Assembly (NCBI GenBank): GCA_965112735.1 | Contig: OZ218952.1 | Location: forward strand, 2,418,001-2,482,000 | DNA: 64,000 nt | Source: Phaeosaccion multiseriatum | Lineage: Eukaryota; Protista; Ochrophyta, other classes | Direction: 5' to 3' | In this document: one piece after another, positions 4,156-10,300 of the stretch | Layout: each line of letters opens with the position of its first letter | Numbering within the stretch: position 1 is the stretch's first letter | Notes under the pieces: generated by a model | Told to the model about the DNA's origin: nothing | The model's database searches: none | The model's input: only the letters and a program-made list of their open reading frames with translations | Position numbers and translations under genes: made by a program

Positions 4156-4635
4156 ACGGAATACGCCAGTGAAGCAGGCGCCCATTCAGGTGTGCATCAG
4201 TGTCAAAGGAGATGAGATGGTTTCGACCGGACCAAGTCCGTGAACGGGCCGGACAGAAGCGAAGCATTGGACTTCGCAGCGACTTACTGCTCCTTCTGTT
4301 GTAAGAGTTTCCTTTGGAAGTGAAGGAAGGGGGGATGGAGGGGGGAGCAGGGGGAGGAGGAGGAGAAGGAGGAGGAGGAGGAGAAGCAGGGGGGGCTGTT
4401 GCGAAAGATGTACTTCGTACAAGTTACATCTCTCGGGGGAGAACTACGCGGGCTGAGGGGAGGAGGCGTGTGTGCGTGCGTGCGTGTGTGCGCGTGCGTG
4501 AGTCGCCGCTCGCGTCGTCGCGTCGTGTACATAGAACAGATTAAATTCCCAATTTGTAAAGAGAACTTATCAATTTTTTAGAAATTCGATTGCGGCTTCA
4601 GATGCGGGCGAGCCGTGAATGGTGCCCGCAACATC

Positions 4636-4999
4636 GTACGACATTGTCTTCCTGCCGCAGTTCAACACCCAGGATATGGTGCGGAGGAGGTAGCCCCGTG
4701 GCTTCAGAAGGATCAACAGCAAGACGGCCAGAGCCATGATGACATGGTCCCACTTTAGGTTTCGCGAGATGCTGAAAGCCAAGGCTCTCGAGAAGGGGAC
4801 CAACGTCGTTATGGTGACAGAGGAGTGCACCTCCAAGGCCTGCTCCGAGTGTGGCGCCGTACGCAACAATCTGGGTGGTGCGAAGGTCTTCCAGTGCCTC
4901 CATTGCAACTTTAGATGCGGGCGAGACGTGAATGGGGCCCGTAACATCTTCATCAAGAGCATTGTGGAACAAGGGTTGACAATGACATGGTCCAGGTGA
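4636..4999 (+). pseudogene. Fanzor2 copy A: C-terminal fragment (RuvC-II, zinc finger, RuvC-III)
   Basis: YDIVFLPQFNTQDMVRRR*PRGFRRINSKTARAMMTWSHFRFREMLKAKA..VVMVTEECTSKACSECG..LGGAKVFQCLHCNFRCGRDVNGARNIFIK. In-frame TAG at 4691-4693. Preceded by an extra RuvC-III fragment at 4587-4635 (DCGFRCGRAVNGARNI). Confidence 0.9.
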
Positions 5000-5134
5000 T
5001 GCCAGAGCGACAAGCGCTGCCAGCCACAAAGCGGACACTCTCCGTGGATTCCAGAGTGTGGAGGATGCGACCGCAAGAAGCAAGGCTGCTGCGCAAAACT
5101 CACTTCGATCCAAGCGGAGGAGAGGGGTGGCATT
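4981..5134 (+). ncRNA. Candidate Fanzor omegaRNA scaffold / right end of copy A
   Basis: Sequence overlapping and following the ORF end, conserved with copy B up to a sharp boundary at ...GGGGT(G/A)GCATT. Position matches the known TnpB/Fanzor RNA location; expression is not shown. Confidence 0.55.
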
Positions 5135-5145
5135 GTTTCTTTTTT

Positions 5146-5310
5146 AATGCTACCCCTCTCCACCGCTTGGATCGACATAAGCTCTGCGCAGCAGCCTTGC
5201 TCCTTGTGGTACTCGTTCGCCTCCTCCACACTCTGGAATCCACGGAGGGTGTCCACTAGCTATGTGGCTGGCAGCGCTTGTCGCCCTGGCATCACCTGGA
5301 CCATGTCATT
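5146..5310 (-). ncRNA. Candidate Fanzor omegaRNA scaffold / right end of copy B
   Basis: Reverse complement aligns to 4981-5134 with two small indels and scattered substitutions, and ends in the same GCATT. Confidence 0.55.
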
Positions 5311-6551
5311 TTAATGCTCCACGATGCTCTTGATGAAGATGTTGCGGGCCCCATTCACGTCTCGCCCGCATCTAAAGTTGCAATGGAGGCACTGGAACAC
5401 CTTTGCACCACCCAGATTGTCTCGTACGGCGCCACACTCGGAGCAGGTCTTGGAGGTGTACTCCTCTGTCACCATAACGACGTTGGTCCCCTCCTCGAGA
5501 GCCTTGGCTTTCAGCATCTCGAGAAACCTAAAGTGGGACCATGTCATCATGGCTCTGGCCGTCTTGCTGTTGATCCTTCTGAAGCCACGGGGTTGCCTCC
5601 TCCGCACCATGTCCTGCGTGTCGAACTGTGGCAGGAAGATAACATCGTACTCTTCGCACATTGCCTTCCTTCCTATGCACATCCTGCTGCACGAGATTCT
5701 CGATCCGCCGGATCGCACGATGCCACGCTCGACGCCGCCGATAGCGGACCTTGGACTTGACGTTCCGATCGACGGATCGAGATTGTAGACGGTCCAGGTG
5801 TGCAAAAAGAGGTCGATACACGCGCCACACATCGCCCGGGGCCACCTCCGTGACAACTCCGTGGTGATCGATGACGGTGTTGAATGTGCGCACGCCTGCT
5901 GGGTCCAACGCGCACACCCCAAGGTTGCTCGCGTCTCCCTCAAAGTCCATCTTCAGACGCCTCTTCTCCGTTACCACTGTCCAGAAAGTCGCACAAAGTG
6001 GCTCCTTCACATCCCTTCCCACCGTCCCCGTCCTCGAGCTCCTCAGTATTCCAACTCTTGCCTGGCACTTTCATGGTCTGCACGTCCTTCTTCCGTCTAT
6101 AGTGCAGGTCGAAGTGGTGTCCGGGGTCTTTCTGGCGCTTGGCGACGTCGCTCTCGTAGGCCTTGACAATCATGACAACATCCACCATCGCCCCGTCCCG
6201 GATCGCCGCTGCCGTCTCCAACACCCACGCTGTTTTGCGCGGAGTTCGCTGGAGCAGCCCGTGGCATCTTCCTCCAGCTGCCCCTGTGCCTTCCCTTTCT
6301 CTTCTTCTTGACGCGCCGCTGCTTGTTGACTCCTCCATATGCACGTGGCTGGGCCCCGATGACCTTGGCGCGAAAGTCTTTCACATTCATTTCGCACTTG
6401 CCCTCCTTGTACATGGATGTCCAGCGGGCAGTCCCAAACCATCTGTTGAGCCTCTCGGTCCAGGCCGGAGTCGGAAGAAGCTTGATGCGCCTGGCACGAT
6501 TCCCGAGCACGCTGTCCGGCGGAACCTCCGTCCTTCTCTTCTTCCTCCATC
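5311..6551 (-). pseudogene. Fanzor2 copy B: near full-length, frameshifted RNA-guided endonuclease
   Basis: Successive frames give RRIKLLPTPAWTERLNRWFGTARW (TnpB N-terminal motif), WVLETAAAIRDGAMVD..KAYESDVAK..FDLHYRRKKD, GVCALDPAGVRTF (RuvC-I, D at about 5903-5905), RRIENLVQQDVHRK, YDVIFLPQF, VTEEYTSKTCSECG..FQCLHC (relocated Glu plus CxxC..CxxC) and RDVNGARNI (RuvC-III). At least 3 frameshifts. Confidence 0.92.
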
Positions 6552-6900
6552 ACCCAGTGGTTCGTGGCCGGAGATCGACGGAGAGAATGGGCGGGGTGCT
6601 CCAAGAAGAAAAAAAGAAAAGAGGATGGAGGAAGAAGAGGAGGACGGAGGTTCCACTGGACAGTGTGCTCGGGAATCGTGCCAGGCGCGTCAAGCTTCAT
6701 CCGACTCCGGCCTGGACCGAAAGGCTCAACCGATGGTTTGGGACTGCGCGCTGGGTCGACCCCTGACACGCTATCGCCCACTTTCTCGATAGCGCGCTAT
6801 CGGCCGCCGGCCGATAGCGGATAGCGCGCGCCGGCTGGCGCCGGGATAGCGTTAGCGTGTCAGGGGTCGAGCTGGACATCCATGTACAAAGGAGGGCAAG
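6552..6900 (+). pseudogene. Inverted Fanzor2 N-terminal fragment with a basic NLS-like stretch, interrupted by a MITE
   Basis: 6624-6900 is a diverged inverted copy of 6397-6551 and encodes EEKKKRGWRKKRRTEVPLDSVLGNRARRVKLHPTPAWTERLNRWFGTARW. Confidence 0.85.
6756..6870. mobile_element. 115-bp MITE inserted in the Fanzor fragment
   Basis: Perfect 18-bp TIR TCGACCCCTGACACGCTA (6756-6773 / 6853-6870). Flanks GCTGGG / GCTGGA. The empty site CGCTGGACATCC is visible in copy B (about 6415-6426, minus strand). Internal GATAGCG/CGCTATC repeats. Confidence 0.9.
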
Positions 6901-7018
6901 CCGCGCGCCATAGTTGGCACCAACTTGATCATTCTCGACCATCCTTTCTGATGGTATCGAGGCACGAAAAGGATGGTCGAGAATGATCAAGGTGGTGCCA
7001 ACTATGCCGCGCGGCTTG
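6897..7018. repeat. Fold-back hairpin: 51-bp arms, 2 mismatches, 20-nt loop
   Basis: 6897-6947 is the reverse complement of 6968-7018. Confidence 0.92.
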
Positions 7019-7167
7019 TTCACGTCCGTAGCGGTAGAGTCACCCGCGAGACGGAAGGGCCACGTCCGCGCCACAATGGAGCAGAAGCGGTTCCAGAAGG
7101 GCTGGAACAGCAGGGGACCCCGATCACTTGGCTGGCTGCCATGGGAGAAGTCTACGCTCGCCTCCAT
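6968..7167 (-). pseudogene. Possible extreme N-terminus of the Fanzor2 ORF
   Basis: MEASVDFSHG..LLFQPFWNRFCSIVARTWPFRLAGDSTATD resembles, from memory, the PFWN..W.P..TD N-terminal segment of Fanzor2/IS607 TnpB. Same strand as copy B and upstream of it. Confidence 0.5.
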
Positions 7168-7320
7168 GGACAAATGGCCTCTTTAATTTTAAAAAGTGCG
7201 GAGCTTTGTACGGAGAGAGCCCTTTTTCTACAACCCCCTGTTGCTTCTATTGGAAATTGGAAATTCTCTCATTCTTTCTCTTTTTCCAACCTCACTGCTC
7301 CTCCTCCCCCTCCTTCTCCA

Positions 7321-10300
7321 TCACACCACCGTCGTGACCCTCAGTGGTAGCAGGGGCTGCTCTTGGTCAGAGAAGGAGACCCCCCTCGCGAGGGGGCGGT
7401 TCACAGATGGGCTAATCACAGATGGCATTGACGCCGCCTCCGGAGGCACAACAGGCCCAGACTCTGGGAGATAAAGAGAGCCCCTTCGCAACTGCCCGCG
7501 GAGGTGCTGTGGCTTGCGCCGGGCCTCTCTCTCCAGCGCGCCCAGCTCGTCTCCGAGCCGCAGCATACGCTGAAGGTAGATTCCCCCCCCCCCTTCCCCC
7601 TCTCCTCCTCCTCCTCCTCCTCCTCCTCCTCCTCCTCCTCCTCCTCCTCCTCCTCCTCCTCCTCCTCCTCCTCCTCCTCCTCCTCCTCCTCCTCCTCCTC
7701 CTCCTCCTCCTCCTCCTCCTCCTCCTCCTCCTCCTCCTCCTCCTCCTCCTCCTCCTCCTCCTCCTCCTCCTCCTCCTCCTCCTCCTCCTCCTCCTCCTCC
7801 TCCTCCCCCTCCTCCTCCTCCTCCTCCTTCCCCTGCTGCTGGCGATACCGCCTTTGACGTGTTCTTGGCCTTGATCTCTCCTGTGGTTTCTGCCGTCGGC
7901 CCCCCGTAGTCCGCTGCAGGGAGGTGTTGCAGTCGAAGAGACTCGCAGAGCTTCTTGGTGGAGCGCACGAGGGCGTCGTCGCGGAGAATGCTGGTCATGC
8001 CTTGCTTCAACTCCACCAGTGTCACCCACCTGAGTGTGGTCACGAGGAGCAATGAGCGTGTGTGAGAGTGAGCTACTTCGTGAACGGACTGCAGCTACAA
8101 GACCACACACTACTGGGTTCATTACCACCGACAATAGAGAGGGCAGGGAGGGGAGGTTAGGCCTTCCTCACTCCTCCTCCTCCTCCTCCTCCTCCTCCTC
8201 CTCCTCCTCCTCCTCCTCCTCCTCCTCCTCCTCCTCCTCCTCCTCCTCCTCCTCCTCCTCCTCCTCCTCCTCCTCCTCCTCCTCCTCCTCCTCCTCCTCC
8301 TCCTCCTCCTCCTCCTCCTCCTCCTCCTCCTCCTCCTCCTCCTCCTCCTCCTCCTCCTCCTCCTCCTCCTCCTCCTCCTCCTCCTCCTCCTCCTCCTCCT
8401 CCTCCTCCTCCTCCTCCTCCTCCTCCTCCTCCTCCTCCTCCTCCTCCTCCTCCTCCTCCTCCTCCTCCTCCTCCTCCTCCTCCTCCTCCTCCTCCTCCTC
8501 CTCCTCCTCCTCCTCCTCCTCCTCCTCCTCCTCCTCCTCCTCCTCCTCCTCCTCCTCCTCCTCCTCCTCCTCCTCCTCCTCCTCCTCCTCCTCCTCCTCC
8601 TCCTCCTCCTCCTCCTCCTCCTCCTCCTCCTCCTCCTCCTCCTCCTCCTCCTCCTCCTCCTCCTCCTCCTCCTCCTCCTCCTCCTCCTCCTCCTCCTCCT
8701 CCTCCTCCTCCTCCTCCTCCTCCTCCTCCTCCTCCTCCTCCTCCTCCTCCTCCTCCTCCTCCTCCTCCTCCTCCTCCTCCTCCTCCTCCTCCTCCTCCTC
8801 CTCCTCCTCCTCCTCCTCCTCCTCCTCCTCCTCCTCCTCCTCCTCCTCCTCCTCCTCCTCCTCCTCCTCCTCCTCCTCCTCCTCCTCCTCCTCCTCCTCC
8901 TCCTCCTCCTCCTCCTCCTCCTCCTCCTCCTCCTCCTCCTCCTCCTCCTCCTCCTCCTCCTCCTCCTCCTCCTCCTCCTCCTCCTCCTCCTCCTCCTCCT
9001 CCTCCTCCTCCTCCTCCTCCTCCTCCTCCTCCTCCTCCTCCTCCTCCTCCTCCTCCTCCTCCTCCTCCTCCTCCTCCTCCTCCTCCTCCTCCTCCTCCTC
9101 CTCCTCCTCCTCCTCCTCCTCCTCCTCCTCCTCCTCCTCCTCCTCCTCCTCCTCCTCCTCCTCCTCCTCCTCCCCCTCCCTTCATCACCGGCACTCACCC
9201 TCTACTAGCAAGGTCGAGGTACTGCACGAGACTCTCAAGCTCTCCCGCGTTATGGGGACTGCAGAAGTCAACAAAACACAAAGAGTGAGCAGGCAGGAGC
9301 AAGGCCAAGGCGAGGGTCGCATAAGAGGGAAATAAGTTGCCGCGGCCGCAGGGTGGACTCACGCAAGACGTGGCTAATCGTACGGACCATCCATCCTCCT
9401 CCTCTTCCCCCTCCTCCCCCTGCTGCCCTCACCAACAAAGCAAGCCTCCGTCCCGCCCGCCCTTTGCTGTTACACCCCCCCCCAACACACGCACACACAC
9501 ATACACATACACAAACGCGCGCGTCTCTCTTGGCTGCCCTTCTTTCCCACCCTTTCTCCTCCCCTCTCCCCAACCCCCCTCACTCACTCACTCACTAACC
9601 CCCCCCTGCCCCCCACGCGGACTCACACGTTGGCCCTTTGCAGCAGGCCCTGGAGGAGTCTGGAGTCGATTTCGGTAGCCGGCTCGATGCCGCAGCGGAA
9701 GGCGAGGTCGATGAGGCGAAGTCGAACCTTACGAAGGTAACTGTCCAGTGCTTGAAGAATGGTCAAGGTGCCCTGGCTCTTGGCAACGAGTAAGCGCTTG
9801 TGCGATTGGACGATGCGGTGCGCTTCCAGCTCCACTCGTTGAGTCTCTTCGACCTACAGTTTCATGGAAGTGATTGGTTGGTTGGTTGGTTGGTCGGTTG
9901 TTTGATTGGTTTGGTTCGGATTAGGGTTAGGTTTAATTAAAGAAAAAGGAAATCAGAAAGCCCCAAGACCCCAACCCTAAACAAGCTCTTCACGAGCCCA
10001 TAACAAGTCGGTACCAAGCCGTTAACGAGCCGTTCACAAGCCGTTCACAAGCCGTTAACAAGCATCGCCTCGGCATACCTTGCGTTTCTCGGCGCGCTTC
10101 TTGGCTGCGAGTCGGCGAAGATTGATGGGCCGAGATGGACGACCCTCCTGCGGGATGCCCAAGGTGGGGGGGAAATAGAGGGAAAGGCGGGGGGGGGGGG
10201 TTGGGGAGAGAGAGGGGGAAGAGAGAGCGAAAGCGAGGGGAGAGACGGGAGACGGAGAGAGGAGGGAGAGGGAAAGAGACAGAGAGACGAGAGAGTCCCA

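Follow-up and report, generated by a model that had tools for sequence, protein, structure and literature searches.

Positions 4587-7170 of the 64,000-nucleotide stretch of contig OZ218952.1 analyzed here (the window, used below for the whole stretch) very probably hold a decayed and rearranged cluster of fragments of a Fanzor2-type gene, encoding a TnpB-like RNA-guided nuclease of the kind with a DPG motif and a relocated Glu, in the nuclear genome of a eukaryote (an alga, probably a stramenopile). Fanzor genes have been catalogued by the thousands across eukaryotes and giant viruses, algae included. An earlier reading of this DNA, made from its letters without database searches (the sequence-only reading), had stitched positions 4587-7170 into one gene on the minus strand. 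What stands of that gene is a near-complete TnpB/Fanzor-type copy on the minus strand at 5314-6549, termed copy C, which spans the helix-turn-helix (HTH) domain to RuvC-III. Positions 4587-5310 belong instead to two further fragments (A and B) and to a 3' flank shared with copy C, and positions 6756-6870 to an unrelated miniature inverted-repeat transposable element (MITE). The locus is not a single gene; it consists of at least four gene fragments arranged in three palindromes, together with the MITE.

Identity and type of copy C

The open reading frame (ORF) listing and a three-frame translation of the minus strand contained all the motifs quoted in the sequence-only reading. From the N-terminal side, copy C carries RIKLLPTPAWTERLNRWFGTARW (6421-6489), KTAWVLET (6213-6236), ALDPAGVRTF of RuvC-I (5882-5911), VIFLPQF of RuvC-II (5623-5643), VTEEYTSKTC with the relocated Glu (5443-5472), a zinc finger composed of CSEC (5434-5445) and CLHC (5380-5391), and RDVNGARNI of RuvC-III (5338-5364), all on the minus strand. 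The profile search proposed in the same reading returned two Pfam domains: PF07282 (Cas12f1-like TNB domain) in the 210-aa ORF at 5311-5943 (E 1.6e-20) and PF12323 (HTH_OrfB_IS605) in the ORF at 6097-6510 (E 9e-5). In addition, the last 118 aa of copy C matched the NCBIfam model guided_TnpB ('RNA-guided endonuclease TnpB family') with an E-value of 7e-20, and a scan of 1.8 billion representative proteins yielded 8193 matches at E<=1e-3, the best of them at 1e-36 with 61% identity.

The best PDB sequence match of copy C was 9b0l (E 1.7e-12), the mimivirus protein ApmFz2, whose catalytic residues are D324, E467 and D501 (PMC11832414). In the alignment to 9b0l the first Glu of VTEEY falls on E467 and the Asp of RDVN on D501. 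On its own the RuvC-I piece was too short and divergent to match anything in the PDB; via the homologue P0003, the Asp of ALDP could be aligned with D324. The absence of the canonical Glu from RuvC-II, already remarked upon from the sequence, was found to be a feature of the family, as this site is occupied by Pro in copy C, in fragment B and in almost all members of the family; the relocated Glu hardly varies among them (alignment A1). Both the RuvC-III Asp and the CxxC..CxxC zinc finger of the TNB domain are kept in copy C. According to Yoon et al. (2023, PMC10711439), the combination of DPG with the relocated Glu is the fingerprint of Fanzor. Its DPG part is interrupted here, since copy C reads DPAG at RuvC-I, whereas 15 of the 15 aligned relatives read DPG (alignment A2). 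In its simplest reading, DPAG may represent a one-codon insertion that damaged a gene descended from one with DPG.

The assignment to Fanzor2 rather than Fanzor1 is supported by the best match being ApmFz2 by both sequence and fold, and together with the PF07282 match it upholds the earlier view of a Fanzor2-type TnpB-like gene in a eukaryotic nuclear genome. Foldseek, run on an AlphaFold model of the last 118 residues of copy C (predicted local distance difference test score 80.5), ranked 9b0l_P first (E 1.4e-5, template modeling score 0.64), while the Fanzor1 structures PpFz and GtFz reached E-values of 0.06-0.5 in the same search. When the homologue P0003 was searched against the PDB, 9b0l was matched at 1e-26 and ISDra2 TnpB at 4e-9, and no Fanzor1 structure was found at <=0.01. 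The homologues possess a compact core of ~410 aa with an HTH. The HTH_OrfB_IS605 domain is found both in the window gene and in the homologues, and the HTH is a Fanzor2 trait according to Jiang et al. It seems very unlikely that the gene is a Fanzor1 or an ordinary prokaryotic TnpB. The classification of elements from Ectocarpus and EsV-1 as Fanzor1 by Bao and Jurka (PMC3627910) speaks for such an assignment, as does the score of the NCBIfam model IS200_TnpB, which exceeds that of IS607_TnpB, although both scores are far below the cut-offs and thus uninformative for telling the types apart. These points are opposed by the relocated Glu and DPG of the family, by the compact core and its HTH, and by ApmFz2 being by far the top match in sequence and fold with Fanzor1 structures absent or weak; a prokaryotic TnpB is further at odds with the eukaryotic nuclear setting.

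Among known systems, ApmFz2 (L79 of Acanthamoeba polyphaga mimivirus, PDB 9B0L, PMC11832414) is the closest by sequence and fold. It shares the catalytic layout and the zinc finger, its REC likewise begins with an HTH, and a basic stretch immediately precedes this HTH; the identity to the window gene is ~32% over the C-terminal module. However, ApmFz2 is intact and resides in an IS607 element with TnpA, whereas the window copy is broken, carries DPAG, has no N-terminal domain and has no recombinase nearby. The comparison also bears on the stretch KKKRGWRKKRR, which had been taken for an upstream nuclear localization signal. This stretch lies on the plus strand (6611-6643), in an inverted partial duplicate (fragment D), directly ahead of the HTH. 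Its place is that of the basic 'thumb' of ApmFz2 (residues 109-130) and not of its nuclear localization signal (residues 1-53), and the proposal did not gain support; on the minus strand copy C keeps just WRKKRR, preceded by a stop.

Proteins from Ectocarpus, Pylaiella and contexts of nucleocytoplasmic large DNA viruses (NCLDV), among them P0178, P0170, P0173 and P0003, share 50-53% identity over ~350-400 aa with the window gene and the same domain order. They are intact ORFs among viral genes, while the window copy lies in host DNA without surrounding viral genes, and the TAGGYG right end of these relatives contrasts with the lack of a recognizable right-end motif in the window copy. The protein QDZ22394.1 of Chloropicon primus has the same C-terminal module at ~50% identity, but belongs to a different clade in our tree. 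Chloropicon Fanzor2* was described as an algal nuclear Fanzor2-type gene outside IS607, carried by a cut-and-paste transposon with terminal inverted repeats and target site duplications (Yoon et al., 2023, PMC10711439). Ends of this kind are not definable at the window locus, and QDZ22394.1 is unconfirmed as the protein of that study. Finally, ISDra2 TnpB (PDB 8H1J/8EXA) has the same architecture and core size, and residues 217-577 of P0003 align to it. It differs in carrying the canonical RuvC-II Glu, where the window family has Pro, and in lacking DPG; moreover, it is a prokaryotic protein from an IS200/605 element, where it is accompanied by a Y1 transposase.

Lesions, authenticity and genomic setting

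A frameshift-aware alignment of copy C to the intact homologues P0003, P0165 and P0005 extended over ~400 residues at 50-52% identity, with copy C read in four segments. Segment 1 (6549-6253) includes the WRKKRR basic stretch, the HTH_OrfB_IS605 region (RARRIKLLPTPAW...FGTARW) and a K/R-rich insert, as seen in the PF12323 match, alignment A3 and the three-frame translation. Frameshift 1, one extra base at 6249-6252, leads into segment 2 (6251-6060), the REC/WED part (KTAWVLET...DVQTMKVPG), with 52% identity to residues 264-320 of P0003 by tblastn. The zone of frameshift 2 follows at 5978-6059, the position of the shift itself (6011, 6059 or 5978) varying with the homologue to which copy C is aligned, and contains a gap of ~25 residues relative to the homologues. 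Segment 3 (6010-5669) comprises the end of WED, RuvC-I (CALDPAGVRTF) and the bridge helix, with 49% identity to residues 377-462 of P0003 by tblastn. At 5668, between DVHRK and KAMCEE, the alignment to the three homologues shows frameshift 3, consisting of one extra base and the loss of two residues. Segment 4 (5667-5314) holds RuvC-II with its Pro, the relocated Glu, the zinc finger and the RuvC-III Asp, on the evidence of PF07282, the 9b0l alignment and the AlphaFold/Foldseek analysis, and ends at the stop codon 5311-5313. Another stop stands directly upstream of segment 1 (6550-6552), there is no start codon, and the N-terminal 70-170 residues of the homologues are missing.

Because of the three +1 frameshifts, the ~25-residue gap, DPAG and the loss of the start and N-terminus, copy C is dead, and we infer that no nuclease function is left at the locus. 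The sequence-only reading had likewise regarded the copy as dead with its catalytic residues still readable, and the three frameshifts are now mapped and present in assembled reads (unitigs). A functional gene, whose frame changes would be introns, programmed frameshifts or sequencing errors, is a most improbable alternative. It would account for all three shifts being +1 with the first and last segments in a common frame, and introns are frequent in Fanzor genes (PMC10530073). However, at 5668 a single base separates adjacent homologous codons, and frameshift 3 is therefore not an intron; introns were ruled out as the source of the frame changes on the ground that adjacent homologous codons leave no room for them. 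Furthermore, the unitigs reproduce every break site, a stop precedes the HTH with no start or N-terminus, and the ~25-residue gap and the DPAG insertion come on top of this.

The authenticity of the island was assessed with Logan unitigs from three runs of one sample, probably the assembly's own. In the three runs, no difference was observed over 4912-5368, including the centre of palindrome 1 and the stop codon, or over 5563-5735, including frameshift 3. The unitigs also showed no difference over 5828-6783, which contains frameshifts 1 and 2 and the centre of palindrome 2. It had been pointed out that the island could turn out to be an assembly chimera or a bacterial contaminant. We regard a chimera, or a contaminant of bacterial or viral origin, as scarcely credible. 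The nearest intact relatives do occur in giant-virus contexts and metagenomes, and run X5, made from a second sample of this organism, has zero unitig depth over 4612-6483. On the other hand, the contigs of X5 amount to just 34 M letters and hardly reach the flanks, the unitigs span the joins between fragments as well as both palindrome centres, and the GC content resembles that of the flanks. A MITE with hundreds of copies, also present in X5, sits inside the island, and host microsatellites and a spliceosomal gene are found on the same contig. At the locus, X5 gives only traces on the flanks and a weak joint from 6545 to 7294, being too small to tell absence from low coverage. Very long (CCT)n arrays occupy 7586-7841 and 8164-9200; across the locus from them, at 4325-4395, there is a (GGA)n array.

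The island is embedded in a eukaryotic nuclear genome, as follows from the gene for Aquarius on the contig and from the high-copy host MITE inside the locus, and it is old enough to have received the insertion of that MITE. Aquarius is the spliceosomal intron-binding helicase, and its multi-exon gene lies on the minus strand at ~25.4-31 kb of the window. One of its exons is 67% identical over 279 aa to a fragment from Ectocarpus fasciculatus, while other matches of comparable length, plants included, do not exceed 57%. On this sequence comparison the host may be a stramenopile rather than a green alga. The description of the genome as algal-type thus remains plausible, with the Aquarius gene favouring a stramenopile over a green alga.

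Fragments, palindromes and their origin

Self-comparison of the 64-kb window revealed three palindromes, all at this locus. Palindrome 1 (4636-5650) consists of arms at 4636-5134 and 5146-5650, arranged tail-to-tail around an A/T-rich loop of 11 nt (5135-5145). Palindrome 2 has arms at 6421-6551 and 6624-6754, arranged head-to-head around a 72-nt spacer (6552-6623). Palindrome 3 (6897-7018) begins where the homology of fragment D stops; it is a single-copy structure with 51-nt arms (6897-6947 and 6968-7018), 96% complementary, and a 20-nt loop. Neither the family nor this genome region is characterized by palindromes: an inverted repeat of >=80 nt occurs in only two of 87 related loci, and the window has no other palindromes. 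Rfam returned no family at threshold, and its sub-threshold matches to miRNA precursors at the palindrome centres (5085-5195, 6524-6651 and 6909-7005) are generic hairpin hits and no evidence of miRNA genes.

The remaining gene fragments all lie on the plus strand. Fragment A (4588-4635) comprises 16 codons of the tail, DCGFRCGRAVNGARNI, with Ala in place of the RuvC-III Asp; it is a direct repeat of 4899-4948 (86%), has an inverted match at 5338-5387 (88%) and is joined directly to fragment B. The latter (4636-4990) is an inverted second C-terminal half, running from YDIVFLPQF via the zinc finger to RDVNGARNI, with 90% amino acid identity to copy C by tblastn, a PF07282 match at E 8.7e-20 and an in-frame stop at 4691-4693. 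Its 3' flank (4991-5134), within the left arm of palindrome 1, is 91% identical to 5146-5310 with two internal indels. Fragment D (6624-6754) is an inverted copy of the N-terminal HTH part, 93% identical to 6421-6551 (PF12323, E 5e-5), which KKKRGWRKKRR enters from the spacer. It resumes past the MITE at 6871-6900, where it matches 6397-6425 inverted at 97%. The MITE itself (6756-6870) measures 115 bp. Its terminal inverted repeats (TCGACCCCTGACACGCTA) are perfect over 18 bp, and it is flanked by a target duplication of 5-6 bp, GCTGG(G/A), the empty site being kept in copy C. Its unitig depth is 250-600x that of single-copy sequence, and it is abundant in X5 too. It is a host element that was later inserted into fragment D.

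The 165 nt that follow copy C on the minus strand (5146-5310) are the expected place of a guide (omega/re) RNA scaffold and of the right end of the element. The centre of palindrome 1 is situated 165 nt past the stop of copy C, which is within the 151-220 nt range of the relatives, and the flank is common to both arms. The typical 3'-end RNA layout asserted by the sequence-only reading was not confirmed: the fold of the flank is not significant (z = -1.26), the two arm sequences offer only one compensatory pair, and the right-end model of the relatives (R1) has no match in the window. RNAalifold likewise predicted no pairs on the trimmed right-end alignment of the relatives. By analogy with what has been shown for ApmFz2, the intact protein would associate with an RNA transcribed from the 3' end of its gene and cleave matching DNA next to a short motif.

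Concerning the origin of the arms, fragment B and copy C differ at 5.7% of their common coding sequence, with 10 synonymous and 8 nonsynonymous changes (dN/dS, the ratio of nonsynonymous to synonymous rates, 0.2); the synonymous excess in this pair, 10 of 18 changes, has a binomial P of 0.002-0.02. Fragment D differs from copy C by 6.9% (9 differences, 6 synonymous and 3 nonsynonymous). Taken together, the two arm pairs show 16 synonymous and 11 nonsynonymous changes, distributed 8/4/15 over the codon positions, and the arms of the 3' flank differ by 8.7% plus indels, compared with 5.7% in the coding part. The synonymous excess and the greater divergence of the flank suggest an origin of the arms from two or more members of the family whose divergence took place under selection. 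In addition, a variant unitig over 5725-5857 carries 7 changes and 3 indels, and a joint in the unitigs connects B-like sequence at 4636 with 5690 on the other strand, leaving out 39 nt in which the 5668 frameshift lies. The probable source of this joint is a third copy at another genomic site. Both observations point to further paralogues, in line with the earlier expectation of a family with other copies in this genome. The palindromes would most likely be scars of a fold-back or template-switch rearrangement that united sequence of at least two diverged, once-selected family members.

A possible, though less probable, alternative is that all three palindromes are in-situ fold-back (template-switch) duplications of one inserted copy, which then decayed neutrally with no second paralogue involved. 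The symmetry down to the 11-nt loop and the 72-nt spacer, the similar divergence of the arm pairs (6-7%), the restriction of the palindromes to this locus within the window and their absence as a family trait are all consistent with it. It is harder to reconcile with 16 synonymous changes among 27, with the codon-position pattern and the P value of the B-C pair, and with coding arms that are less diverged than the 3' flank. It has also to be considered whether the inverted fragments form an exapted hairpin-RNA locus, whose double-stranded RNA would be processed to small RNAs silencing the Fanzor or virus-derived family, comparable to Mu killer of maize. In its favour, coding sequence of a mobile family with many copies is present here as long, near-perfect inverted repeats. 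We find this unlikely, as the sequencing runs found look like DNA (flat depth, the kind of run being unstated) and give no transcript or small-RNA support, and as the Rfam matches are generic and all below the gathering scores. If true, the host would use this locus to silence an RNA-guided nuclease element, and the genome might contain several loci of this kind.

Several points weigh against the reading of a decayed nuclear cluster drawn from two or more family members. The synonymous excess rests on 27 substitutions, to which mutation bias or gene conversion could contribute, and a symmetry reaching down to an 11-nt loop is more easily obtained by in-situ fold-back of a single copy than by juxtaposing two. 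The unitigs are not fully independent of the assembly, as they probably derive from the same sample, the host lineage is based on one partial gene comparison, and without another genomic copy for comparison the element ends and intact copies are unverified.

Relatives of copy C and biological meaning

A maximum-likelihood tree was built from 107 proteins, with copy C read through and X placed at each break. Copy C falls in a clade of 32 members (Shimodaira-Hasegawa-like approximate likelihood ratio test support 100) and branches deep within it. The clade contains proteins of Ectocarpus and Pylaiella as well as metagenomic proteins encoded beside giant-virus genes, the viral neighbours being D5 primase-helicase, VLTF3, PolB and AEP primase. 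The tree and these neighbours show that copy C descends from a clade carried in the genomes of giant viruses (phaeovirus-like NCLDV) and brown algae. A scan of IMG/VR with P0173 found no relative, and a scan with the clade alignment found one 155-kb viral contig at 26% identity.

The right-end features of the relatives were derived from the 3' ends of L005, L006 and L009-L032. Sequence remains conserved for 151-220 nt downstream of the stop, the last conserved motif being TAGGYG, immediately after which copies of one element diverge (L020-L025, L013-L017), and a 5-bp terminal hairpin is present with compensatory changes. The relatives have the appearance of solo, mobile Fanzor2 elements residing in DNA of marine giant viruses and metagenomes. 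The derivation from IS607 put forward by the sequence-only reading did not receive support, as no serine recombinase was found at the locus or beside the relatives examined and the IS607_TnpB model scores below IS200_TnpB. The Pfam searches covered 20 ORFs in and around the locus, including the long ORFs of the window, and 10 ORFs upstream of relatives, and returned neither a recombinase nor a transposase; six contigs of relatives likewise had no serine recombinase. The sole hint of an IS607 link is the GG in TAGGYG of the relatives, which fits the GG crossover of IS607 (PMC10711439). An ORF of ~139 aa upstream of relatives was considered as a partner gene and rejected, since three such ORFs are mutually unrelated and absent from the window. 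The metagenomic contig L022 carries two TnpB/Fanzor-like genes, 34% identical and head-to-head (1-1092 minus and 1201-2838 plus).

Fanzor2-type genes of algae and of their giant viruses have already been published (PMC3627910, PMC10530073, PMC10711439). The copy described here is what remains, in decayed form, of a giant-virus-associated mobile element of known type, and only its palindromic arrangement is unusual. The TAGGYG right end and terminal hairpin of the intact metagenomic relatives would help in obtaining natural intact members of the clade. As for the host, the finding adds one case in which the clade carried by phaeovirus-like giant viruses has left nuclear relics in another, probably stramenopile, alga. 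The synonymous-biased divergence and the variant unitigs are indirect signs of paralogues that were under selection not long ago, and the palindromic arrangement could, in combination with small-RNA data, show how the host handles such elements.

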